Of a stretch of DNA of 64,000 bases, positions 1,938 to 60,810 are shown piece after piece (positions within the stretch are counted from its first letter, which is position 1; each line of letters opens with the position of its first letter). This DNA comes from Dimorphilus gyrociliatus (lineage: Eukaryota > Animalia > Annelida): NCBI GenBank assembly GCA_904063045.1, contig CAJFCJ010000006.1:2160946-2224945 (forward strand), read 5' to 3'. The notes beneath the pieces were generated by a model. That model saw only the letters and a list, made by a program, of their open reading frames with translations, did no database searches and had not been told where the DNA came from. A program made the translations under genes and the position numbers.

Positions 1938-2856
1938 AAAACTTGCAAAACATTTTTATTTTTACTTAATAACTCTCTCTCTCTCTCTCTTTCCCTCTCT
2001 CTCCTCCCTATTCGTCTTCCTCTTGCTATACCTTTATCTACTACCATTTCCTATTCTATTTTTGTTTTTTTTTGTTTTGCTTATAAACTATAAACGAATA
2101 GTAATTAATTAATTATTATTGACTATTAATAATATCTAAAATTAGACCAAAAAAAAAAATAAGAGTTTTTTTTTTAAAAAAAAAATATTTTATTTTTGTA
2201 CAGCTTTGACAAATATTTTACAATGGAATTAAGTTAAGAAATATTGATAAATCTCTTTTAATATATTTCTTCTCATTCCTTTCTCTCTCTATATTTATAT
2301 TTTTTTAAAAAAATAATGGTTATAATACTATGTTAACTTTTAGCCTATAAATATAATGATAACAAATCCCTATATAATTATTCCTTTTAAAATACAGTTT
2401 TTAGATCGATTTTAATTGATTGTTCTAAAAATGAATCATTCAGTAGAGTAATTACATCTATTCTTTTATACTTTAAAAGAAAATTTTTCTATGATTAGTT
2501 AAATTGATCTTTGAAGAACTTTGACAAACTTTTTTTTTAATTTCATAATCCAACAAGATTTCTATTGTTAAACTCTTCAATCTGGTGTAATTATTTGTAA
2601 TTTATATAGGTTGATATAAATAGAGTTTAAATATTAAAGAAAACAATACTTTCTTTTTCTCTCTCTTTCTCTGTGACTCGCTTCCTCACACATACATACA
2701 CACACTGTCTATACTTTTATGCAAATATAACATAATTTGCAATACTTTTAATCATAAAAATTGTATTTACAGATATAATAGATCTATATCCGAATATTTG
2801 TTTACAAGTTAAGTTTATACTTCTTTTTTCTATATCAAAATTCATTGGGTGTGTAT

Positions 2857-2881
2857 GAGAGAGAGAGAGAGAGAGAGAGAG
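2857..2881. repeat. (GA)n microsatellite
   Basis: Uninterrupted GA run. Confidence 0.9.
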
Positions 2882-3690
2882 GTAAACTTGTTGTTTTAAT
2901 GAATACTAGATGGCGTTTACCGTGAGAGTGAGCTTATACTTTTTTTTTCTTGTAAATTTGAATAAGGAAAAAGTATACTTTTTTTTGAGCTCTAAAATTA
3001 ATATAATCCATAATTAGATAGTATTTATATTAATCCGTCTAAAAATATATATCTTTTAATAATTAACAAAAAAACAGCTATCTCTTTTTTATTATTAAAA
3101 GTTGCAAAGAGTAGCTAAAAAACAGTAAATTCAATCTATATTGAATTCTATATATAATCTTCATAAATATATATATATATTTATATTGATGATCTCTTAA
3201 ATCCAAACCACATTTATGGACCAATGTGTAATTATCATAATTGTTTGTTTATATACTACCTGTTGTATTATTAATACGTTTAATTAACTTACATATAAAT
3301 TTACTCATAGTTATACCATTCTTCTTTCGTTTCTATAGTATTTTATATATAAAACTATAAATATAGTTTTTAAAATGACAAACTGTAGAATAATTTTCCA
3401 TATTTAAAAATAAATAAATAAAGATATAAAGTAAACAAGATGCAGGATGTTTAGAAAATATTATCCTTATAATAAAGATAAATCGTTAAATCTTATCAAA
3501 GCAGTGATATTGTTGATTTCGATTGGAAATAGTAATAAAATATTGAATTATTGTTGTTATGATTTAATATTTTGTATTTGTCTTTTCAAACATTAATTGT
3601 TTGTTGAGATTTCAATAAAATTGTTTATAATTAACTCACTTTAAAAGTAAAATGTTAAAAATTAAGTTTTGAAAAACGCGCCAATTCTAT

Positions 3691-44756: not shown

Positions 44757-46093
44757 ATGCATCTTTCCTTTAAGATATTAGAAGCTTTATTATGTTTTAT
44801 AATCGTTCAGCCAAGTGCCAACAGCATAGATCAGTAAGTCTTTTTCTTATTAAAAGCTAATATTTTTTATAGAAAAAGTCGATAAAACCTTTGGTTTATT
44901 AATTAGCCCTAATTAAATTGTTCACATTTCTACCAGTTTTATGATATATATATACATTTACATTATTCCTTATTGTTTCAAAAGATGACCTTTCTTAAGT
45001 TTTTATCGATTAGTTTACTTGCATATTTAATAGAAACTTACAAATATTTAATTAATTTCTATTATAACAAAGGCAAAGTATTCGTTCTTTTGAAGAGAAT
45101 CTTTTAAAGATTGTAAAGGAATATACTTATGTAAAAGATATTACCTCCTCCTATGACGACAAAATAAAAGAGCTTGGGGCTACAACTTCTAGAATTAATG
45201 GTTTTAATTTAATTGGAGCACTGGCTAGCGGAATAGAAGAGATTCTAACGCAGAATATAAAATCCTTAGAGGTATTTTATTCCATTCTATAATTTTATAA
45301 ACGACTTGTTAAAATATATCAATAACAATCTAGTTCGCCGTTGAAGAAGCTGAACGAATAGCAGAAAATTACACAATAAATCCCGAGGTTTGTTTTATTG
45401 GAATATAAAACTTTAAGATAATCAAATTTAATTAAATTCAATAGAACAATTTAATATTTAAAATGATCTACTAGAGAGAGCTAAACGAATATTTTACATA
45501 ATTTACATAACACAGATGCTAGGTAATTTTATAAACGTCACGAACGCTATTGTTAGGAATCGATTCTTTCGCTTTTTTTAACTAAAAATCAGCCATGTGC
45601 TTCCATCTGTTAATTAATGAATATTTTCGTTGTTTAGTCTCGTGCTAACTTTGATTTTAATTATTTTATACGAAAGAAAAAGACCTTATTGAATAATTCT
45701 TGTTTTTTTTTTTTTTTTCATTAATAGTTAACAGAAGTCCATTATCTAAATGCTAGGAAGCTTGATCCAGACAAGGAAGGTTTTGTTTATCATCCAGAAT
45801 ATATGGAAAAGATAGGTGATAATGTGTCGGCAGTTCAAATTCCTGTTGAAATCTACGAAGGCCGTCAGTGTCAATTACATTAAATTTTCATATTATTGAA
45901 CAGGACGCAGTTATTATTATTCTTTTTTTGTTATTCAATATTCATATATCATTACAGGCAATGACGTATTGAACGATCTAAAGTGGACAAGTGCTATTGA
46001 AAAAACCTGGATTTCAAATAGGAAAAAGTATAATCAAACTTTATTCCAATACTTTGGAAGCTATACTGGTTTGATGAGAATTTATCCCGGTAT

Positions 46094-46131
<38 letters not shown>

Positions 46132-49100
46132 ATACTCGAAATATAAATATTTTATATTCTTATCAATATTCTATTAGCGACTAAATGGTCTACTCCCGAA
46201 CCGGATTTGTATGATGCTAGAAGGCAGCCTTGGTACACCCAAGGGGCAAGTTCACCCAAGGATATGCTAATATTAATAGATACGTAAGTTAATTTAATAC
46301 TTTTAATTACTACTGTATATAGATATACTAATACATTAGATAAATTTGCTTTAACTTAATAAACGTACATATAAAGTATATACATTTATATATATATATT
46401 TATATATATAGAAATATGTATTTAAATTTATATATTAGTTGAATAGGCTTATAATTAATTGATTATTAATTGTAAGAGTCCATGGACTCTGTCCTTCACA
46501 AAATTAATATATACAATAAATACAATTCTAATTAATTACTGAAACAAAAGGAGTGGCAGTACTCATGGACAAGCATTGACATTAATAAAAGAGACCGCCA
46601 AAGCGATTTTAAACACTTTGGGACAAAACGATTACGTTGCAGTCGTAAAAGTAAGAGATTGTAAAAAAAAACAAAAATATAAAAATTATAAAAAACTATA
46701 AAAAAAAAACTCTTTAAAATTTATCATCTTCTAATCTTTTTCTTTTATTACTATTATTATTAATATTATTGCTTTTTTTTTCTTTTTTAATTATCCGATT
46801 CATTGTATATATGATAAAATAACTCTATTATTAAAACATTAATTAATAACATTTACTTTTTTTTTTTACTTAATGAGAGATAGAGAGGGATAGATGAAAA
46901 AAAAATTATAGTTTTCATTAAATTTTGTTTTTATAAAAAAAAAAATTACAAATGAAACAATGAATCTGATAAATAAAAAAGACGCCTCTCTCGTTTCTAT
47001 TCTTTTAGAATTATCTTTAAAAAATTTTTCTTATATTTGTTACTGTGGAATTGTTTGAACACGAATGCAACTGTAATGCACATTTTTATTATTTCATTCT
47101 TAAAAAAAGAGTTACAAGCTAGTTATTTTCTCTTATGGTCTCGGATAAAAATATTATGTATCCTTCGTCGTCGTCGTCGTCGCCATTATTATCATGATTA
47201 ATATTATCTGTCACTTCTTCTTCTTCCTCTTCTTCTTCTGCTTCTGTTTCTGTTAATGTCAATAATATTTCTTTATGCAAGACAGCTGTCTAACTCTAAT
47301 AATATAATTTCTTTCTCTTATTTCTTAAATATTACCAAGCACTTTTTTGATATTATTTTACAAATAGAATTATTCTAGATATACACTATTTTTGGTTTTC
47401 TATGGGTTTTTCTTATATCTTATATATTATTATATAATCCTATATTTTCATAGGATATTTAAAGAAAAAACTTAGTTAAATGATGCATGATTAATGCAAT
47501 ATATGCATGATAACTTCTAAATAATGTTATTATCTATATATTTTATTCATTTCTTTTTATCATCTTTTTTCAACAAAATAGTTTGCCGAAGCAACTCAAT
47601 TTATTGGTTGTTTTAAAAATTTTGTTCAAGCTAATCCAAGGAATAAAGAAGTAAATAGTCTCTTTCTTTCTCTTTTTTTTGAAATATTATAATTATTGCT
47701 ATTAATATTTTAGGTGCTACTCAACGATATTGATAAATTACAGGCGGACGAAATAGCAATGTATAAGCAGGCTTTTAAATTTGCCTTTGAAAGAATTAGG
47801 GAAGTTCGTATTGAAATATTATAGATTTTATGTCAAACTTTAAGACTTTATCATAAAAAATATCATATTCTCTAGTTTAATAAATCATTGGAACAAGGGG
47901 ATCTTAATGGAGCAAAATGTAATAAAGTTATAATGTTTCTTACTGATGGTGGAACAGATACTGCTGAAGATATATTTAAAATGTACAATTGGCCAGAAAA
48001 GAAAGTAAGAAGATATCGTTACACATTTCTTTTTTAATGTAACAAGTAGTTGACTATTTCTCTTGTTTATAGGTAAGAGTATTCACATATATGGTGGGGC
48101 CACAACCTAATGCTTACGCAGCCGTTAAATGGATAGCCTGCGCTAATAGAGGTAGCAATAATGAATTTATTAATTTTTCAGTTTGATTAGTTAAGCGTAA
48201 TACAAGAGTAAAGCAATCGAATTACAGACATAAACGAAATTAACATCTTTTTCTGTAGGTCATTACTCCCGCATTCCTGCTATGGGTGATATTAGAGCAA
48301 CAGTCCAGGTACATTTAAAATCAATATATTAGAACTTAATTATAAATTAAAATGCCATTATTTTATCAATAGATATATTTAGAGCATTTGGCTCATAGCG
48401 CCAAAGAGTTTGTATGGACAACAAGTTACCATAAAGTTTGTTTTCAATGACAAACTATCATCATTCCATCAATTATTAATTAATGTTTTTCACTGAAGAA
48501 ATTAGGCATTATGTCGACTGTTACACTTCCTGTCTTTAATACCACAGCTGATCCACCTGTAAGATCTAAAACATATTTAAACAATTTACATCATTCAAAA
48601 GCTAATTAATATCTTTTGGTTTTAAAATCTAACTCAGAAAAATACATCTTTACTAGGCGTAATGGGTACAGATGTTCCAATTAATTTTCTAAAAAGACTG
48701 ATACCGAAAGAAAAGGTTTACAGTTTTTTATATTAAAAGAAAAAGTGTTTTATGATCGTTTTATATAAATTTTTTTCTATTTATATAAACAGTTAGGAAT
48801 TAATGGATATTCTTTCGCTATAAATAACAACGGATATGTTCTCTTTCATCCTGATCTAATATCTCAAAGGGGACTGCTAGGTTATACGCCTATACTCGAT
48901 TTATTAGAAATTCAAATAGAAAGTACAGATTTAATAGAGGTAATAGGTTTTGTTATATATTTTCGCATCAATGTCAATATGATTTATGTTTAATATAGCT
49001 TAGAAAGAGAATGATACAAAAACTTACTGGTACACACGAGATGGAGGTAACAGGTCCTGTACGAATAATAGGCGATGGTCATATTTATAACGCAACTCGA

Positions 49101-52100
49101 CTTTATTATTATACGTTTATACCGAAAACTACATATAGGTAAACCTTATATATTTGTTGTATATTTTATTAATTTATCAATTCAATGCTATTCAATTCAA
49201 GTGTGGCCATAGTTTTACCATCATATCGTAAACATTTCATTAAACCATTTGAGAAAAGCATTAGGAATAAACGTTATTCCGATGGGAAGAATTCTTTAGA
49301 TGAAGACGTAATGATCATATCACCTTGGTACGTGATAAATATAATAATGTAGAGGTGATAGATGATTGTATTGATCGATTTTATTAGGGAATGGTGCAAA
49401 AATGTGACTGATGTTGACAAATTGAAAGATACAGACATAAGTGGACCAGATTGTATGTAATAGGGTCTTTATTATTTTATTCTTTTCATCTTTCAAAACA
49501 ATCCATTCCAGGTGACAAAAATTTGATTGATCACTTATTCTTGGACATCTTAGCAACCGAGGATTTACTATCAATATGGAGAGAAAAAAACTCAAAGGAA
49601 TTTGTTTCCTCGTTCTTCTATACATCCGAAAGTGGTTTGACAAGGTTCTTCCCCCTTTCGTAAGTTTCTATCTTGATTCCTTTCATCTTTTACCATATAA
49701 TCAATATTCAAATTTACCATTCACTTTGTTCCCTAATAGAAGTCGAGATTCCTATCAAGATGATGCCGACGTACGGAAATCATCTTTCTTCAAAAGATCA
49801 TTGGACTCGAATGACTGGTTTTTTAGCACAGATAATCCCACAGGTTTTATAATAATTCAACAATTCAATTATAGTATTACACTAAAGGTAAACATTGCTT
49901 ATTGTTTATAGATTGTTTCAATGGCAGTTGTACATCAAATATTGTAGTTGGAAAATCATTTTCAACTTTTTCTGGGAAGATGAAAGCTTCAGGTATGCCA
50001 TCTGTCGGTTTATAGTTATATTTTTTTCTCCTCTTTTTTTTAAATTGGTTTTCAATAAGTAAGATCACATAAAGTAAATAATTCTAAGTAAAAAAAATGA
50101 AATATCCAAAGAGCTGTAGAACTGAAAAAGGGACAAAACTTTTAAGAAATCCAGACCACAATAAACAACGCTTTTATAGCTTGAACTCATTATTGAGTAG
50201 TTTTAAATGAAATGACTCTAAACTACTGTGTTCAAATTGTCACTTGTCCACTCTTAGTCGTTCGATTTTGTCCCTTTAAGGGTAAGATAGCTAGAGTATG
50301 AGCTGCGTGTCTGGAAAATTCATATACTTTCAAAATATCAAATGGAGACCAATATTCCTACTCTGTGTCCTGATACTTTCTCTTCTGCTTTTAAAAAGAA
50401 ATTTTCAATCGTCAACCAAATTGGACGTTTTCAAAAGAGGTTTGTTTGTCAGTGGTAGTGCAAGTGGAAGTTCCAAGAATGGGGTATACAGTATGAAAAA
50501 TAACGTTGGGAGTAATGGTGTACTTATTTGCGAACCATCTGGTGGTTTTGGCAATAAAGTTCGAGTTATTACCTCCTGTTATAAATTAGCCGAAATTCTC
50601 GACAGAAAACTCATTATTTTAAATACTTTTTCAAAGAGAACATGCAATATATCAAGACACTTCAACTTTACAAAATTACCAATTATGGGAAGAGATTCGA
50701 ACCTGACTATTGAAAAACAAGTGATTTTAACCTACGAAATGATACAAGACAAAGATACTTGTCTCAAAGACATCATTTACAATAAAGCCAGAGTTATCAA
50801 ACTAATTGCTTATCACAACTTCTGGATGCATTGTATAACTGGTAATAAACAACTTCAAACTCGTTATACACCAGAAGCGCTAGAATTTAACAATATGGCT
50901 TATAGAAAAGTGTTTGAGAACCTTTTTCAGCCAACACCAGAATTTAATAAAATATTAAAGTATCATAAGGACAATATTGTTAAAAGAAAACCTAGAGATA
51001 AGATGCTTTGTCTTCACATCAGAAGCGGTATGGTTAAAAGAGATTCGGCAAATGTTGTTAGCAAAAGTTGCCTTATCCGTTATATGATGAAAGTAAGAAG
51101 ATTTGTCAGGAATAGCCCACAAATAAAGTCAATACTTTTGGCTAGCGATAACGTTAACGTAACAGATTTTGTTTATCGACATTCACCCAAGAAGAGAATT
51201 ACCCATTATATACCAGGAAAAGTTGGACACTCAAGTAGACACGTAATGAGCTGTAAAGATATGGACAAATTATTTACCGAGTTCTGGCTAATGAAATATT
51301 GTGATTACGGATTGTTTCTATCATCTTCGAGTTTCTCTTACTATGGCATTCTAAGAAGTGCTCATCTTAAAGAATTAAGTATTTTCAATTGCCAAAAAAA
51401 CGATTTAACGGAAACGCCCAAATCAAAGGAAAAATATTGGGTTTTGAAATAATTTTTGGCCAAATTATGTTTTTGTCCCAAAATATTTATATTTATATTT
51501 TATTTTTCACTTATAATTATAAAAAAAAATACATTAATTTATTTAACGATCGGGGAGAAGACTATAGACAATATCATAGTGTAGGCCTATTATTAGTTTG
51601 GATAGTTGTTTTTTAATTTTGTTAGTTTTCAACACTTTTTATATTTCTGTAGTAACCGGTTTTAAGATGACCGCCAACAAACTTCGAAAAATCATAATAG
51701 ATAATGTTGCGTCTTGTACGAATACTGATTTCTGTCTGCTAATTGATGACGGAGGATACTTGATTGCATCTTCGAATGAGGACGATGAGAGATATGTAAA
51801 TATTAATTATCAAACCATATGTTATGGTATTTGCTATAATTTTATTAAAAATTTACTTTTTTAAAAACAGATTGGATCTTTTATTGGCAGTATTGAAACT
51901 CGTGAAATTTATGCGAAAGTTATGAATTTATTAGTAAAACAAAACGTTTACAAGCAGTAAGTTATTCTATTTATGTAAATGTTTTTAGTTTAGTCTACAA
52001 TACTAATTTGAAATAAAATATAAAACTAGGATTAAAGTGTTCGACTATCAGGCCAAATGTCCACAAGTTAGGAAAAAGACTAGCGGCGTATCTAGAACAA

Positions 52101-53180
52101 TTCAATTGGTAAGAAAAAGTGTACAAAGTAGTCTTTTAAATTTTAGTTAACCCTAATTAATTAAAAAAAAATAACTAACAAATTCTTTTAATCCATTTTT
52201 CCTTCCTTTTCTTTTTATCGTTCAGCCATTCATTTACGAATTACTAACATTTAGTTGGTGGAACTTAAAAATGAGTGCCTTATTTACTTATATAAACTTG
52301 TATGTATATATTTTTAACCCAATTAAAACATATATACAGTATTATAGATTTCTTTATTCTTTTAAATAAAGATTCTTCGTCTCCTCTGAACCAGCAGGTA
52401 TTGGTTGTTGTTTACTTTCTGAGTTCTATATAAAATTTCAAACCAATACACTTCTGATAAATTGTGTTATTTGGAATAGATTCCGCCTCGCTAGACGAAA
52501 CAGCCGAACAAAAGAGCTGCTTAAAAGCAGAAACTCTCTATATGCTAGAACATATTCAAAATGTACAAGCTGTATTACGAGAATGCTCAGAATGCGATAT
52601 AGGGTGAGTTCTAATTTAAATAATTATAAGAAACCATACCTTTTTAAATGTAATACGTACTCAATTTTTTATATGTTTAATTACAGAAACGTCGAAGGAT
52701 ACAAAATTAAAGAGACAAATCTATTTTTCGTCTCCTATAATGATTTTAACAGACAATGCGACATCTCTTGCCCATTTGATCTCCTTCCTCATAAATCTAC
52801 ATTAAATATCCTTTATTATTATTATTATTACTAATGTTAATGTAGAAAGACATTAAGACTCTTACTTTCCCAACTAAAAATTATTTTAATATTTTTACAA
52901 AAAATCATTCAATTTAAATTCTTTAACTCATTCTATACGTGACGATCCAGATTACGCAAAACTCGAATGTGTTCCAGATCAGAGATTTAGAAGAAGACCG
53001 GATTATTGCTTTCAAATTAAAGTAAAGGTTTCTTCAACGTAAAAAAAAATCTAATATATTCTACTATATTTCATATTTCTCTTCTTTAAACAGGAAACTC
53101 AAGTTTGCGGGACAACTTTTACCTATCCAAATCTATGGATGATATTAATATTAATTGTTTTCAAATTTAAACTACTTTAG
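44757..53180 (+). CDS. CACNA2D: Voltage-gated calcium channel auxiliary subunit alpha2delta, many small exons
   Basis: Signal peptide, [40 protein letters not shown]|[11 protein letters not shown], Cache domain GVMGTDVP...[46 protein letters not shown], and C-terminal CG plus hydrophobic tail ending at TAG 53178-53180. Confidence 0.95.
50298..51452 (+). CDS. Intronless type II membrane fucosyltransferase-like glycosyltransferase (GT37/GT23/GT11-like, GT-B fold), nested in alpha2delta intron 49993-51652
   Basis: A 384-aa ORF with an N-terminal TM ([14 protein letters not shown]), [12 protein letters not shown], motif I LCLHIRSG, motif II ILLASDN and motif [26 protein letters not shown]. The flanking host exons join in phase 1 across it (KMKAS-V-TGFKM). 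Confidence 0.85.
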   Translation: MSCVSGKFIYFQNIKWRPIFLLCVLILSLLLLKRNFQSSTKLDVFKRGLFVSGSASGSSKNGVYSMKNNVGSNGVLICEPSGGFGNKVRVITSCYKLAEILDRKLIILNTFSKRTCNISRHFNFTKLPIMGRDSNLTIEKQVILTYEMIQDKDTCLKDIIYNKARVIKLIAYHNFWMHCITGNKQLQTRYTPEALEFNNMAYRKVFENLFQPTPEFNKILKYHKDNIVKRKPRDKMLCLHIRSGMVKRDSANVVSKSCLIRYMMKVRRFVRNSPQIKSILLASDNVNVTDFVYRHSPKKRITHYIPGKVGHSSRHVMSCKDMDKLFTEFWLMKYCDYGLFLSSSSFSYYGILRSAHLKELSIFNCQKNDLTETPKSKEKYWVLK

Positions 53181-53758
53181 ATCAAACATTCGGCAGAAAA
53201 ACGACAAAAAAAACGAAAAAAAATAAAAAGAAACTTTTTCTCTCTTCAAAAACAGAAAGAAAACACCCTCTTCCTGTTCGAAAAAAATACTCTCTTTGTT
53301 TTACTACGCACAATCAATCCTTTATAATCGAATATATCTTTTCTTTCTTTCTTTACGGGTACTTAAAAAAGTGAAGATGTTGTAAATTTTTCACCTAGTA
53401 AGAAGAAGAAGAAAAGTAAAGGATCAGTTTTGTTAAAGAAAAGGAAAAAAGATAAATGAAAATTTTCTTATATGGAATTATTCTTTTTTTTTTGTTGATT
53501 TTTTTTTCCCCTTTTTCTTTTGATATTAAAGAAATGTTGATAAAAATAGACAAACAAAGCGTTACGTTTTCTAGTTATTGTTTTTTTTTTATCTATAAAG
53601 CTAATTTTTTTTATAAAAAGATAAGATCAAAAAAAAAAGTAGGTAAAAAAATAAAACGATAAAAATAGATATATGATGTATAAAATGATTAAAATAAATC
53701 ATCGTATTCTTTCCCTTTTGTCATATGAAAGAAGATTTGAATGAATGGTATCTTCTTT

Positions 53759-56700
53759 TTAAATATGACAATCTACGGCTGCTTCGTCACTCTTGTTTAT
53801 GAAAAATTTGACGCTATTTCTTCTGGGTTTCTTTCCATCGGGTTCATCTATTGGTTTTGTAACGGCCGGTAAAATTTGTACATTTTCCTCTTCATCATTC
53901 TCCGTAAAGTTACTTGATTTTCTTAGCAACGATTTCAGTGCTTGAGGTTTCTTTTTATTACATTGCATTAATAGATCGTCTAATGATTCAACTTTAGTTT
54001 TTATCTCTTCGCAGATATTTAACTGAAAAATGAAAAATATTCTAATATTTCATTGAAATTTTGCAGTTTTTTAAGTGAAATCTATAATCATTATACCTGC
54101 TTTGTATCGCGATCGTAATGAATCGTTCCCAATGGTATTTTAAGAACTCTTCCATCAGGTAGTTCAAAATTTACAGTTCCCCTTGAAACTTCAATAGTAT
54201 CGCCATCGCCTTCCAATTGTAATCGAGTTCTTCTTGAATCACTGTCTTTTCTGTGACTTTCAGGCATAATATCATCCAACCATTTCAATTCGTTTCTACT
54301 AAATAAACTGTTTAGTAATTTACGAATAGCTGTCATTCCTAATATCAAAAGCGGAAATACTATTGAAGCGGGTGGCATTTTCTTCACTAACCACAAAAGA
54401 GCTAAACAAAATAACTAACAAATAAAAAGTTATTACTATTTTTTATCCAAACTAGAATAACTGATAAATATCGTCTAGTTGATTGTTACCTGTATTAATG
54501 TGAACAAGTGAACGCGTTTCAGCTGAACGTGTCGGAGGTATGGATGGTTTGGTTGATATTTCTTTGGCATAAAAAATATTAATATTCTTTGAACAATTTG
54601 AAGCCCTCTTAAACTTGATATTCCCATGAAGAGAAACACTCCATATAGAACAGGCATTGGTACGTGTTTCAATAACGGCGTCATGAATATACTTTGACTT
54701 ATCAGAACAAAAACCAAAATTCCAGTAACTCTTTGCTCTCGAACACCGAGAAATTTTGGCTTTTCACCCGGTATAGAACACTTAGAAAATTTTGATAGAG
54801 ATCTAACATGATTTATAGATAAAACCGCTTCCGCAACGAACCAAGGTAAGCCAAGAATTGAACACAGACCAATCTAAATAAATTTTTAAGCAATAATAAT
54901 ATGATCTTAATTACACAATAGAGAAAGTCATACACTTACCAATAATCCAACTATTAAAAGATCCAAATGGTAGGCACTACCCTTTACTAATGTATGCTCT
55001 TTACGATTGACTATTATAGCCGTTATTTGCTGATCCATAAATATAAGAATTGTTGCAACAATAGCCGGTCCTAAAGCTGCTATACATGTCCATTTTGGAT
55101 TATCATTAAACGGTGGTATTATCCAAGATCTATCTTCTCTTGTAGGCTTATTTGAGAAAAGATTAACGTAGCTATCGAGTATATTTTCTTTAGATAAATT
55201 GTCAACTTACCCGAAATTTATCTGGAACAATTAGTTTCGGTGTTGGTAAATCTAATATATAATCAACAATACAAAATACGACAATAGCGATAAAAATGCT
55301 AAAATCACTTATAATCACTCGAACCTAGAAAACAATAATAAAAGCATTTTAAAAGCAATTATATATACATATATATAATATACCGTTGAAATGGATTTAT
55401 AAACTCACCCTTTCTGGAAAGAATCTTGTACTTTTGAAGGATTTACAACATTTTGCAACGATAAACGTGCCAGCGAATAGTATTATTGATAAAAAATATA
55501 TGTTATCTTTGTATACCGTTGCTCCACAACCCGATCCAATAGCAGTTCCATTCATCCTAAGACAATTTTTGTAGTTTAATTGCGAATAATTTACATATAA
55601 ATTATTGTTTGTCGTCGAATTGGAAACGTAAAAGTAATCGTCAGTGATATTCTTGTCCGTTATATTATTAAAACTATTATTCGATGGTGGAAGGCAATGG
55701 CAAGAATAATCGGGTGGATGTTGCCAATTAGGATGAAAATTGACTGGAAACTTATACTTAATGTTATAAATATTCCTGAAAGCTTCAACAATGAAGATAG
55801 CTCCTATTAGAAACGTAAATGATTCTTCTGTAAAACGCGTTATATAACGGACTAAGAATGATAAATCGAAAGCTACAATCACTATTATTATTGCACAACA
55901 CCATAAACCAATCCAAAATCTAAATGATAGATAATTCCAGTTCCATTCACTGTAAAAAAAATTCAACAATATACATAAAATATACACAATATACGTATGT
56001 TTATAATTATTTACAATCAACTATACTTACTCGCATAATTGATAAGATATTGTTTCATAAACTAAAATTGGTCCTGTTGCTCCTAATATTATTAAAGGTT
56101 GACCAGAAAATACGTGATAAGCAATACCACAAATTGTAGCTCCAAGAATACTCTCCATAACTCCCTAAAAGCAGAATATTACATTATTTATTATTAATTA
56201 ACTAATTGGAAAATGTAATATTTTCTATATTACCAAATTCTCGTCTGTAGCATCACCAAATAATCCCCCAAATGTTACTATTGGTGTTAAGCACGCAAAG
56301 TACATGAAAAAAAGAGATCCTATACATTGAATGTGAAGGCCATCTTTAAAATCACTTAAATAGTGTCCCTTCCTTCGTTTTACATCATTAAGAAAACCGC
56401 CAAATATACTATTGAATATATAGATAGATCATTTTGAATATTTAACTTTTATACTATTATTCTAATGCTTACCGATTTGTTCTACATAATCCAGCATCTG
56501 GATAGCCACATTCATTTTCTTCATCAATATTCAAAAGTAATTTTTTGAAATTTCCAGTTTTTACCGATTGCCTTCTAGTTTCCTGTATATTTTCATTAAA
56601 AGAGCATATATAAATTAATAAATAAAGCATATAGACTTAAGCAAAAGTTTTACCGGATCTCTAACAGAATTTGGTGGTTCTATTTTTATTTTTGGATCCC

Positions 56701-58541
56701 ATTCAGTTGGAGGTAACACTGTAACCTCATCTAAAAATCCATCAAAACCAGCCAAGAAATCACTTTTATCCAGTGCTTTATAAGCAACCTCTTGAAAAAT
56801 CTATAGAAAACATAGATGAAATAAACGTATAGAAAGAGTATGAAACTAGAATTATTTGTACGTACATTATCGGCCATTAATGTGGATATACACCTTCCAA
56901 TTTCGTGTAATTCATTTTTATAATTAATCGATCCAAGGATAATTACCATAAATCTAGTTGGAACACTTACTTCGGTAACATCCTCTAGATGAATACTCTT
57001 TTTCAAACGAGCTATTCCTACTACTGGTTCAGATATAAAATCCATTGTAGCCAACATAACGTTACTCGCTTCAGCATCTGCAGGTATCTTCTTTCGAAAG
57101 TGAGTATTTTGCTGTTGATAGAAAATATTCTTCATATTAAATGGCAATGTCAAATCTTATGAATAAAGTTTTTACCTTATGAATGACTCCATTGGTTACA
57201 TTCCCATCTAGTAGATTATGTTCACTACCTCTACTTCCGAGATTACCTTTAAAAAAGTCTTTTGTCTTAGTAAAGTTTAAAGAATACTTTTAATAAACCG
57301 TTGGTACCATTGACGTTAACTTTTCTATTATTGTTGGCAATTTCAGAGAAAGTACGCTTGAACAACGGAATTCCATTACGTTGTCTTGTAACTTCGTGCA
57401 AATGGATAACTTGTGACATCATTGTTAGAAAGACTTCCTCCTTCTTTTCAAACGGAATTAATTGATCTTGACACAAGTCAGAGAGTATATGTTCTTTAGG
57501 GAAAGATAATTCATCAGCTAATCTATCTTCAGTTAATATCTTTAATTCTTAATTTATTACTTAGAATTCCTGCTCTATTATTAACTTCAATATCCAAGCA
57601 AAATACTGTACGATTTGTAAAGCAATCTCGTACTTGAAATAGAAAATACAGTGGAAGAGATGCAACGTACGGTTTAGACCAACGCTGACCTTCCTCCTCA
57701 ACATCTTCTTCAAACTTTAACCATCTTGATTTTCAAGTAATTTGTCTTTGTTTATTAACAAACATCGCTAGAATGAAAATATTTACCGTGCAGTTTCGTG
57801 GAATGTACAAACTCCGCTTATTTCATCTCTTCTAAGTTCATCCATTTCACAGAATATTGTATGTGCTTTTTTATCTTCATTCTGGAGTATCTCTGTTATT
57901 CTAGCGTTCGACGCATCTCCTAATAAAAGCAACAGGAGAGAGAGAACAAAGACACAACCATTACATTTAACCATTGAAATACATAAAAAAAACTATACTA
58001 TAATAGCAATGTTTCTGTTATGTTGATAAAAGTAAGAATAACAAACTTTGAGTAATTGTCAAATCTCTACCATCAGCTGATACTCTGGATTCAGTACTTA
58101 TTTGCCTTGAATAGACATGTTCATATCCATTATTTAGTTCATTCCCTTCTTCACCTTCTCTCGACGTCTAGTTTAAAAGAGATGCTTTTTTAATATTAAA
58201 TAGTTGTATTTACTAAGAACCACAAAAAAAGGAGAAAAACTAACGCCTTGCTGAGATTTAGATTTATGCTTCCTATGTTTCCTCTTCTTTCTATGGCTAT
58301 CTCTCTGACAACAAGATTGCGCAATATAAATAGAATTATTTGCAGATGGATACTGCTGCAGATGATGTACTAGAATTGATTTAGTAGCGAAATTTAGGTC
58401 AGGGTAGCTATTTCTTCAAAATGTAAAAATAAAAACTTGTTTACCTTCGGCATCGACGTCTTCATCTCCGTAAGGAATATGAAAACATCTTTCATTTATA
58501 ATAAGTGCATCCAGATTATCTTCTCTAAAATTTCTTGCCAT
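53759..58541 (-). CDS. SLC4 bicarbonate transporter (Na+-coupled NBC/NDCBE type, SLC4A7/8/10-like)
   Basis: FCEMDEL...ETAR|[28 protein letters not shown]...[100 protein letters not shown] and [10 protein letters not shown]. The start codon is uncertain because an acceptor lies just upstream. Confidence 0.95.
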
Positions 58542-60810
58542 TGCTATTTTATAGAAATGATAATAATTACACTAGTATACATGTTTAAAATAAAATTTGT
58601 TAGTAGGCTCTAGTAGTAACCAAACAATATTTAAGTGCATCAAAATATGTTTTTCTGTTCTAGTTGGAAAGATTGATGTTGTTTAGTTTCGTACTTTTTA
58701 AACTCTATATAAACAGATTTATATTTATGAAAACTTATTGACACTCTTTTATCATTCTTCTTCTTATTCTGTCATATATAATAAAATTAAAAAGAGATTA
58801 AAAGGTTAAACGCAAATATCGATAGAAAAATGTAAATGGGGCTATATTAATTTTTCTTTCATGGGAAAGTGTCAAGTGTTGGGGTGAAGGAGTAAAAGTT
58901 CAACGGTTAAGACAGAAGTTTAAATATATTCCAGATGTTAACAGCAACAAGTGTTGTCTATATACCCAAAAAAAAACACACCTTTATATTTAAACAATCA
59001 ATATATCTGTCATAAATACTGGAAAAATAGCGCAAGCTGTTTCAGGTTTTCAATTAAAATTTACCATAAAGGGCTTTTCCACATTTTGGTAGAATTTCAA
59101 ACACAATGGTTGTCGCAATAGTAAAGGGAAAGTTTCCGATCTCCTACTTTTTGACCCGGTTACCAATAGAATTTAATACCCAAGACCCAGTTTTCAACCT
59201 TTCAGTAGTGCCCACCTGTCTAGCCCTTCCCATAAAAAAAATGGCAACTGTAATATTATACAGTCAGATATTAATTAGTTTCAAACACTCTTAAAGTACA
59301 ATTCATAACTCGAATTGGGTCAATAAAGAACACCAATAAAATATGAGTATATATATATATATATATATACAGTATTTCAAATACAACAATGTATATTAGA
59401 ACGTGAATCACAAACGGGGGAGTCAAGAGATTAGAGAATCAATATAGATGTTAACAATCCCATTTTAGCAGCATAAATGCAAAATATTATAAGAGGGAAT
59501 GTAATTTTGAACATTAAAGTTTTTACTTAAAAGCAATTTGAGTGAAAAATTCACTGTTGATGAAAATAAAAAGACCATTCAACGACATTTACCTTTAAAC
59601 TCTTATAAATATGTTAAATTCGCTATTACTTTCCAGCGACTTTCATCTGCTATCTTCCTATTAGACCTTAACCATAGTGTAGAGAAGCGTCTCAATAACG
59701 ACAGTGGACTGGTTTCGAAACCCACTACGCCTTAAATTGTCAAATTTAGAAATTAAGCGGTCAAGTTAACCGGTCATCTGTCATTACCGGTTCATTAAAC
59801 TGTCTAATTGCATCCCGTTCAACTTTTTTCCACTGTAAACAGTCCTTCATAAAGAATTGTTGGTTATATGAACGTGTCCCTACGTTGTACACATTATATA
59901 AAGTGAAAGTATATCTAAAGAGAATATAGGAATACACACCGGAAGAGACAGTATATTACTAATATTACATATAAACTTGACTAAAATCATATAACCTTAA
60001 ACAGATAAGGAAGCACATAGACGACAAAAACTTTTCAAGAATAATGTAAGTATTCTTTAGAAAAAGAAAAATATTGTACATTTAATAAATATACATATAT
60101 TTGTTTATATTTTTAGTCTCATTAATTAACCGATTAGATAAGCTAAATAACGATGATAAGATAGTAAATAAAAATATAAATATTCAAAAATTCTTCTTTT
60201 TTATTATTATTACTATTACTTCCTTCTTTTAGATTTTTTCGTAATTTGTAGGCCTAGTAAGTATATATATATATATATGTATATTGATTGTTTATAATTA
60301 TAAAAAATAACGGCTATTTATGTATATAAACAAACGAAAAAGAGTTATCTTTATACTAAATTTTTAGTATTTTAAAATTTGTGCAATATGATTCATAATT
60401 TCATAATAGGTCACAATTTTTTAGGTTAGGACAGAAAAAGTTCACTATTTGTGTCGTAATAAATCCTAAGTCTATTTATATACATCTGCAGAATAACATA
60501 TTTTATTAAATATTGTTGTTAAGTGTTGTTAAGTAGTAACGTTTTTCGTGGTATTTTAAAAGGAACGCTGGATATTTCGTTTGAGTAATATGGCGGTGAT
60601 GTAGGATTACTTTACAGTGCCACGAAATTATACTTACATAACCTGATTGAGTAACTTAAAGTTACTAGATTGAGTTTTTTTTAGAGCCTATGATATATTA
60701 TACAAAATAAGGTTGACATAGCAATCGAAATCGGTCTATTCGATCTCGATATCCGATATTCATATCAATAAACAAGCACACGATGCCTGGCGCAACACGC
60801 GTAATAGGAC

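Follow-up and report, generated by a model that had tools for sequence, protein, structure and literature searches.

What is a complete single-exon open reading frame (ORF) doing inside an intron of another gene, on that gene's own strand? This question is raised by a 64,000-nucleotide stretch of the annelid Dimorphilus gyrociliatus genome (assembly GCA_904063045.1, contig CAJFCJ010000006.1, forward-strand positions 2,160,946 to 2,224,945), referred to here as the window, in which an alpha2delta-like host gene carries a 384-residue ORF in one of its introns. An earlier note, made from the letters of the sequence, had described the ORF as a type II membrane protein with similarity to plant FUT1 and NodZ, and had suggested that it was retroposed or horizontally acquired. 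The analysis reported here indicates that it is probably a functional gene with transcription of its own, and that its product is a type II Golgi membrane protein, a glycosyltransferase from the superfamily of GT-B fucosyltransferases. This superfamily includes GT11, GT23 (NodZ/FUT8), GT37 (plant FUT1), and GT65/68 (O-FucT).

RNA was used to define the arrangement of the two genes. The RNA evidence consists of assembled contigs of two public runs from independent studies, X1 (a coral metatranscriptome) and X2, which were placed on positions 48000-53900 of the window; contigs of this kind give neither transcript ends, strand, nor true levels. A spliced X2 contig that is 100% identical to the window joins position 49992 to 51653 and skips exactly 1660 nt with GT..AG ends, and the host frame remains open over the joint (...GKMKAS, then V at the joint, then TGFKMTANK...). 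The host exons are therefore spliced across the whole nested gene, and the complete same-strand ORF and the clean joining of its host described earlier are both confirmed. Fourteen further GT..AG joints of the host were found on the same strand, with introns of 59-117 nt. When the large intron is retained, the host frame ends after 7 codons (GMPSVGL, then a stop), approximately 280 nt upstream of the nested ATG. The alpha2delta identity of the host, on the + strand like the nested ORF, was upheld by matches to Pfam VWA_N and VGCC_alpha2 in a six-frame search of the genome (Table 1).

The ORF is a real gene under strong purifying selection that is present in RNA, and not a chance frame. An intact 385-aa orthologue occurs between the same host exons in a related species (contigs L011-L014, from another study), with 81% amino acid identity; the nucleotide identity of the ORF between the two species is 77%. 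Most of the surrounding intron cannot be aligned between them, the exceptions being some 40 nt that lead up to the ATG and one short stretch of the 3' untranslated region (UTR). Comparison of the two coding sequences gave a pN of 0.108, a pS of 0.74, and a dN/dS of approximately 0.04, with dS saturated. Because the same nest is found in a relative at saturated dS, it is old, and the low dN/dS shows strong constraint on the protein. In both RNA studies the ORF is covered by unspliced contigs: two in X2 (49963-50739 and 50710-51432) and a single one in X1 (50253-51418, 15 differences). Presence of the insert in a relative and its expression, two points that the earlier note had left to be checked, have thus both been observed. 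The GC content of the ORF (0.31-0.33) equals that of its flanks.

The gene seems to have escaped annotation. The exact 384-aa protein is absent from a collection of 15 billion proteins, and neither of two homology searches returned a self match for it, whereas a paralogue on contig C8 matched its own NCBI record (100% to DgyrCDS6904). The public D. gyrociliatus annotation therefore probably lacks the nested gene. A literature search found no paper linking Dimorphilus to the family of the nested protein.

The predicted protein has a type II layout, as had been proposed from the sequence. It includes a short N-terminus, a hydrophobic helix (residues 17-34), a low-confidence, disordered Ser/Gly-rich stem (residues 35-70), and a globular part from approximately residue 72; four N-glycosylation sequons are present, along with six cysteines conserved throughout the family. 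An AlphaFold2 model was built on an 18-sequence family alignment (A1) and reached a pLDDT of 74.7 and a pTM of 0.72. Foldseek with this model retrieved AtFUT1 (8e-12), NodZ (1.3e-10), FUT8 (4e-9), and POFUT2/1 (1e-7). A VIA-align scan, which is independent of Foldseek, gave the same order, with Z scores of 19.4 for AtFUT1, 18.1 for NodZ, 15.8 for FUT8, 15.5/15.0 for POFUT2, and 13.5 for POFUT1, followed by GT9 heptosyltransferases at 10.

Profile methods and conserved motifs agree with the fold. The A1 profile, searched against the sequences of the PDB, matched FUT8 chains (E 1e-4), AtFUT4 (9nqh; E 1e-4, with an alignment spanning profile positions 37-314/344), NodZ (8e-4), AtFUT1 (0.014), and POFUT1 (0.09), whereas a single-sequence search with the ORF gave nothing but chance AKT1 matches (E 0.8). 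Conserved blocks in A1 are C-x-P-x-G-G-F/W-G-N/D-x-x-R...L-x-R; L-F-x-P; C-h-h-I-R-S/T-G; and D284 followed by T-E-F-x-L-h-x-x-C...S-x-S-F-G. Residues G83, R89, R242, D284, F329, and S344 are invariant or nearly so in the 18 sequences and are in register with FUT8, AtFUT4, and NodZ. They represent the motifs that characterize the superfamily, namely an N-terminal G-x-G-N/D..R, motif I with its Arg, motif II with its Asp, and motif III of the acidic/aromatic...S-x-F form. In addition, an hhalign comparison of the clade of the nested gene (A4) with the clade that contains NodZ-positive paralogues and rotifer proteins (A5) gave a probability of 99.6% and an E value of 1e-23 over 275 columns.

Curated family models were applied to the nested protein and its relatives. 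Pfam has no match in the nested protein or in the 385-aa orthologue. For GT37, the threshold of XG_FTase (PF03254) was missed by the nested protein, and its best relative was the paralogue L010, with 16.2 bits against a cut-off of 23.4. The nested protein also missed the GT23 thresholds of NodZ (PF05830) and FUT8_N_cat (PF19745), while a distant group of paralogues passes NodZ (P0006 with 33.3 bits and P0026 with 29.1; cut-off 28.3). For GT11, Glyco_transf_11 (PF01531) was missed as well, with only a 14.2-bit match, in the rotifer relative P0008, and O-FucT (PF10250, GT65/68) matched neither the nested protein nor any relative scanned. Some relatives from an exhaustive search described below touch NodZ, FUT8_N_cat, XG_FTase, or GT11.

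Membership in the GT11/23/37/65/68 superfamily is firm, because the fold matches, the motifs in register, the profile matches, and the hhalign link to the NodZ-positive clade all lead to it. Homology to members of GT23 is demonstrable through that same link together with the profile E values of 1e-4 to 8e-4 against FUT8 and NodZ chains. Membership of any single CAZy family is not firm, as every curated threshold is missed and motif I reads HIRSG. The earlier comparison of motifs with GT37, NodZ, and FUT8 therefore holds in part. Each motif pairing in the note was reproduced by the A1 profile alignments, which place GGFGN..R..LAEILDR, LFxP, C-hIR-G, the Asp of (A/T)SD, and TEFxL..C....S.SFG against AtFUT4 (9nqh), FUT8, and NodZ. 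AtFUT1 and then NodZ are the best structures, but assignment to GT37 itself is not supported, as XG_FTase stays below its threshold. The nested gene is best described as a very divergent animal relative of GT37 and GT23 enzymes, in a clade without a curated family model.

POFUT-type enzymes and their kin are luminal, disulfide-rich, metal-independent, inverting enzymes. By analogy with NodZ, FUT8, AtFUT1, and POFUT1/2, the luminal domain of the nested protein would bind GDP-beta-L-fucose through its C-terminal Rossmann half. In this model, R242 would lie at the phosphates, while D284, E328/F329, and S344 would line the pocket for the nucleotide sugar. Fucose would then be transferred in the Golgi lumen, by an inverting and metal-independent reaction, to some glycan acceptor, and the six conserved cysteines probably form luminal disulfides.

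The nested gene is a member of a larger family. A search of the D. gyrociliatus genome (G000; 77.9 Mb in 349 contigs) gave 19 further matches with 20-37% identity, at least 13 of which are intact open frames with a single-exon catalytic domain. Since the paralogues share this single-exon domain, the intronless state is a trait of the family and does not point to recent retroposition or to horizontal transfer. Many paralogues lie in small clusters, namely on C56 (8.5-28.5 kb), C194 (8.9-12.3 kb), C23 (1.7-5.4 kb), C8 (a convergent pair, 587.5-589.9 kb), and C66, and a few are broken. Clusters and copies with internal stops point to ongoing birth and death of family members. Most paralogues have neither an in-frame ATG nor an anchor, so a short 5' exon is probable for them, while L010 and the nested gene carry the anchor in the same exon. 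The family member P0012 lies in ordinary intergenic DNA, and nesting is thus peculiar to the gene in the window.

A maximum-likelihood tree resolved two deep groups. Group A contains the C8 pair, P0006, the rotifer proteins, and a metagenome protein. Group B splits into three: one branch joins L010 and P0003, another joins the nested gene and its 80% and 40% homologues (support 100/99), and the third is an expansion of 12 members. With 3.7 substitutions per site to its nearest paralogue, the nested gene is not a recent copy of any of them. An exhaustive phmmer search of 1.84 billion representatives returned only 9 matches, which comprised the 80% orthologue, a 40% homologue from an organism with 23% GC, orthologues of other D. 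gyrociliatus paralogues, proteins of bdelloid rotifers (Rotaria, Didymodactylos), and one metagenomic protein. A word-indexed homologue search found the 80% orthologue alone, whether the query was the single protein or the 18-sequence profile. An Atlas search yielded candidate leads only, namely cnidarian FUT8-like clusters and a cluster of 323 members, most of them from Mollusca. Taken together, the nested gene is a deep, single-copy branch of a dinophilid family of about 20 copies with a single-exon catalytic domain, related to NodZ-like genes that also occur in rotifers.

Two further observations concern relatives of this family. P0027 (NCBI DgyrCDS1847, on a 4.6-Mb contig of D. gyrociliatus) is a 713-aa protein annotated as "hyaluronidase"; its N-terminal 300 residues match Pfam Glyco_hydro_56 with 310 bits, and by BLASTP it has 33% identity over 96% of a C8 NodZ-like paralogue. 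It is either a real fusion of GH56 with a fucosyltransferase-like domain or a merged gene model. The 40% homologue (361 aa) is encoded on the 23%-GC Logan contigs L015 and L016 (SRR23372231 and SRR23372229), from the same sample series as the 80% orthologue. Either this series holds at least two related species, or the relative carries another, highly divergent copy with no counterpart in D. gyrociliatus. A tRNA that seemed recognizable by eye at the end of the short contig L015 was discarded after ARAGORN found none.

Separate transcription of the nested gene is suggested by RNA depth. Contigs over the ORF have k-mer depths of approximately 2000-3400 compared to 50-250 for host contigs in X2, and of 12 compared to 2-5 in X1, although contig depth is a poor measure according to the tool itself. 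Just upstream of the ATG, the conserved block listed in Table 1 contains an 11-nt palindrome, CCCTTTAAGGG (50272-50282), and the hexamer GTAAGA (50282-50287). The latter had been regarded as a possible splice donor of a short leader. It lies inside unspliced contigs of both X1, whose contig passes straight through the block, and X2, so it does not act as a donor in the main form of the RNA; it is part of the block. Downstream of the coding sequence (CDS), a simple repeat (51480-51546) cuts the reads. A 3' UTR block, AATTTATTTAA(C/T)GAT, is conserved, and in the related species AATAAA directly precedes it.

D. gyrociliatus has neither trans-splicing nor operons, its introns are very short, and its assembly comprises about 350 scaffolds (PMC7854359). 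A start of transcription inside the intron is most likely, given that conservation begins at about 50257, that the X1 contig begins at 50253, that the host frame stops after seven codons, that the palindrome is present, and that trans-splicing is absent. Transcription would thus begin at an intronic promoter near 50200-50253 and end near 51500-51550. The host polymerase would read through the nested gene, and the whole unit would be spliced out of the host RNA. A perfect 12-nt inverted repeat, AAAGGGACAAAA / TTTTGTCCCTTT, was also observed at 50127-50138 and 50266-50277, with 127 nt between its arms. Its second arm overlaps the palindrome, which is conserved in the related species; the repeat and palindrome may be a regulatory site or a stem in the 5' UTR.

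Several results weigh against a separately transcribed fucosyltransferase gene. In X2, one contig extends without interruption from position 49963 in the host exon into the ORF, and some of the ORF RNA is host-derived, as pre-mRNA or as a retained-intron form. With regard to the enzyme, Pfam matches are lacking in the nested protein, in its orthologue, and in most paralogues of group B, which makes assignment to a CAZy family impossible. Motif I is H-I-R-S-G-M rather than the HxRRxD of GT11 and GT23 (the family consensus is h-I-R-S/T-G-W or Q-I-R-T-G-W), Lys replaces the Arg of this motif in two paralogues in A1, and the donor and acceptor of the whole clade are predictions by analogy with characterized enzymes. 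The unbroken contig, which continues through the donor site, and the shared strand would be expected if the ORF had no promoter of its own and depended on alpha2delta transcripts with a retained intron or with an end within it. Such an RNA would be bicistronic for a truncated host and the enzyme, and expression would be tied to alpha2delta-expressing cells, as the earlier note had suggested. However, the contig starts 30 nt inside the host exon, which is the overlap expected at a branch of a k=31 graph from any pre-mRNA, even a trace, and it decides neither for nor against a minor host-fed form. The depth of the ORF contigs is approximately 3- to 60-fold that of the host in two runs, with the reservation that applies to contig depth, and the early host stop would leave the ORF as a poorly translated second cistron. 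Conservation that begins about 40 nt before the ATG, the start of the X1 contig at 50253, and the absence of both operons and trans-splicing in this species (PMC7854359) also argue against a host-fed gene, which we consider quite unlikely. The origin proposed in the earlier note, a recent retrocopy or the horizontal acquisition of a plant or bacterial gene into the intron, could draw on the single exon of the CDS, on the plant enzyme as best structural match, and on a run of nine A residues 70 nt after the stop. Nevertheless, many intronless paralogues, which the note had itself named as an observation that would speak against its view, exist in the genome, and the nearest of them is too distant for a recent copy. 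A species at saturated dS has the same nest, and the 9 matches in 1.84 billion representatives include no plant or bacterial sequence, those that could be named being from rotifers. No poly(A) remnant or credible target-site duplication was found around the nested gene (the sole flanking direct repeat is an AT-rich match of 76%), nor an intron-containing parent among the paralogues. The distant donor and odd composition expected of horizontal transfer were not found either, as the closest relatives are related worms and rotifers and the GC content is that of the surroundings. A retroposition or horizontal transfer that concerned this copy alone is therefore unsupported and already largely refuted, and we regard it as barely credible.

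A different question is whether the same fold serves another chemistry. The enzyme might use another nucleotide sugar, as do the plant GT106 rhamnosyltransferases, which are related to O-FucT, or it might add fucose to Ser/Thr residues of proteins. The lack of any Pfam family in the nested protein would be compatible with this, as would the missing second Arg and Asp of GT11/GT23 in motif I, which looks nearer to the HLRxGxDW of POFUT1, and the clear structural matches to POFUT1/2 (Z 13.5-15.5). On the other hand, the top structural and profile matches (AtFUT1, NodZ, and FUT8) act on glycans, the linked group of paralogues reaches Pfam NodZ, and O-FucT is not matched, which renders another chemistry unlikely, though worth bearing in mind. 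A catalytically dead pseudo-enzyme, a lectin-like protein, or a decaying copy would be in keeping with the broken state of several paralogues (3 TAA, TGA or TAG inside the matches) and with an enzyme status that is predicted rather than derived from biochemistry. All motif residues of the superfamily are kept, however, dN/dS is approximately 0.04, and the gene is abundant in RNA, so that loss of activity is very improbable. A functional gene with its own transcription, encoding a Golgi enzyme of the fucosyltransferase superfamily, remains the explanation that we prefer.

Table 1. Positions of the nested gene, its encoded protein features, and the neighboring host exons in the window
Feature	Position	Strand	Basis
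Host exon with Pfam VWA_N (alpha2delta N-terminal domain)	45960..46094	+	G000:C6:2206905-2207039; 43.8 bits, above cut-off
Host exon with Pfam VGCC_alpha2	49514..49663	+	G000:C6:2210459-2210608; 23.5 bits, above cut-off; exon start 49512 set by RNA joint
Host exon directly upstream of the nest	49912..49992	+	3' end set by RNA (donor GT at 49993 used in X2 spliced contig), 5' end inferred; open frame CFNGSC...GKMKAS
Host intron holding the nested gene, 1660 nt, GT..AG	49993..51652	+	Spliced X2 RNA contig
Conserved block just upstream of ATG, putative 5' UTR or core promoter	50257..50297	+	Near-identical in related species, rest of intron diverged
Nested single-exon CDS, 384 aa, ATG to TAA, stop included	50298..51452	+	ORF search, orthologue, RNA, dN/dS
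Signal-anchor (transmembrane) helix, residues 17-34	50346..50399	+	AlphaFold2 helix H17-34; hydropathy maximum in windows that begin at residues 13-19
GT-B fucosyltransferase-like catalytic domain, residues ~72-372	50511..51413	+	Fold matches span 62/68 to 378/384; paralogue matches 64/76 to 368/382
N-terminal motif GGFGNKVR	50541..50564	+	G83 invariant, R89 nearly invariant (A1, A4); aligns to GLGNRL of AtFUT4 and GYGCQL of FUT8
Motif I CLHIRSG	51009..51029	+	C238, G244 invariant; R242 putative GDP-phosphate-binding Arg; aligned to VIGVHVRRTDK of FUT8 and LGIQIRV of AtFUT4
Motif II LLASDN	51135..51152	+	D284 invariant (A1, A4); aligned to YLATDDP of FUT8
TEF..C..S motif	51276..51347	+	F329 nearly invariant; C335, S344 invariant; aligned to LAEMYLLSLTDNIVASSRSTFGYV of AtFUT4
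Putative 3' UTR of nested gene, end approximate	51453..51545	+	High-depth RNA contigs reach bin 51349-51545, gone by 51546-51742
Host exon directly downstream of the nest	51653..51795	+	RNA joints at 51651/51653 and 51795->51871

Some side observations were made on the host gene and its surroundings. Enumeration of GT..AG paths for the full chain of host exons from 48793 to 49992 gave many open paths and was abandoned, and only exon ends fixed by RNA were used; boundaries within 48937-49262 and 49659-49912 are not fixed in this way. At least four loci (on contigs C20, C5, C11, and C6) match the VWA_N domain of alpha2delta, so the compact D. gyrociliatus genome keeps several alpha2delta paralogues. 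A Band-3 / HCO3- cotransporter gene on the minus strand (~53640-59810) is convergent to the 3' end of alpha2delta, and this order is kept in the related species, in whose contigs the gene was identified by Pfam HCO3_cotransp and Band_3_cyto. The coral metatranscriptome X1 also holds spliced alpha2delta fragments, and the nested gene in it is approximately 98.7% identical (window 48638-53900); a Dimorphilus-like worm lives in, or contaminates, the coral sample.

These results are useful mainly for annotation and for the study of invertebrate glycans. A seemingly missing gene can be added to the public gene set of D. gyrociliatus, and same-strand intronic genes are easily missed by gene predictors. 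The locus is also a clean, long-lived case of same-strand nesting in a genome whose other introns measure approximately 60-120 nt. A miniature, gene-streamlined annelid keeps a family of about 20 fucosyltransferase-like genes of the NodZ/GT37 kind, very divergent and unrecognized by Pfam, which is relevant for invertebrate glycobiology and for the coverage of CAZy. A bolder and, in our estimation, rather improbable extension is that the nested gene and its orthologues, together with the L010 type and the tandem expansion, form a new spiralian glycosyltransferase family at the rank of a CAZy family. Such a family would have an undescribed donor or acceptor specificity, for example for fucosylated mucus or cuticle glycans of meiofaunal worms, and the placement in alpha2delta would reflect shared use of chromatin or enhancers. 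If this were true, expression of the nested gene would be coupled to excitable cells through its position. The locus gives no evidence of a gene passed from plants to animals, and nesting of this sort is common, which leaves the wider significance modest.

Among characterized enzymes, the closest comparison is with the plant GT37 proteins AtFUT1 and AtFUT4. Structurally, AtFUT1 comes closest (Z 19.4 across 289 residues), AtFUT4 aligns with the profile over its full length with four motifs in register, and both are type II Golgi proteins, as is predicted for the nested protein. In contrast, identity is 11-13%, the XG_FTase threshold is missed, the nested protein is approximately 100 residues shorter and lacks the extra stem region of the plant enzymes, and it comes from an animal, where no cell-wall acceptor exists. 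NodZ and FUT8 (GT23) are the second-best structural matches (Z 18.1 and 15.8) and give the best profile E values; paralogues pass the NodZ threshold, R242 aligns with the Arg of HVRR in FUT8, and D284 with the Asp of ATDD. Unlike these enzymes, the nested protein has no Pfam match, no second Arg and Asp in motif I, and no coiled-coil or SH3 domain as in FUT8. POFUT1 and POFUT2 (GT65/GT68) share the same variant of the GT-B fold, but structural and sequence scores are lower, O-FucT is not matched, and POFUTs are soluble proteins of the endoplasmic reticulum and not type II Golgi-anchored. Oyster CgFUT2 was considered as a relative and set aside, as its published description is that of a classical GT11 enzyme with VHVRRGD, which does not belong to the family of the nested gene.

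The nest can be compared with those of Drosophila, where 28.7% of nested genes lie on the strand of their host and 72.5% of these have a single exon (PMC3814207). Same-strand nesting, which the earlier note had called the rarer arrangement, is not unusual for a single-exon gene. As in Drosophila (PMC3814207), a short single-exon gene on the host strand occupies an enlarged intron and leaves host splicing unaffected; the Drosophila nests are often young duplicates, whereas the D. gyrociliatus nest is old, as indicated by the saturated dS, and its gene is strongly constrained. The arrangement thus follows a common pattern, and the gene is useful for annotation and invertebrate glycobiology rather than surprising.

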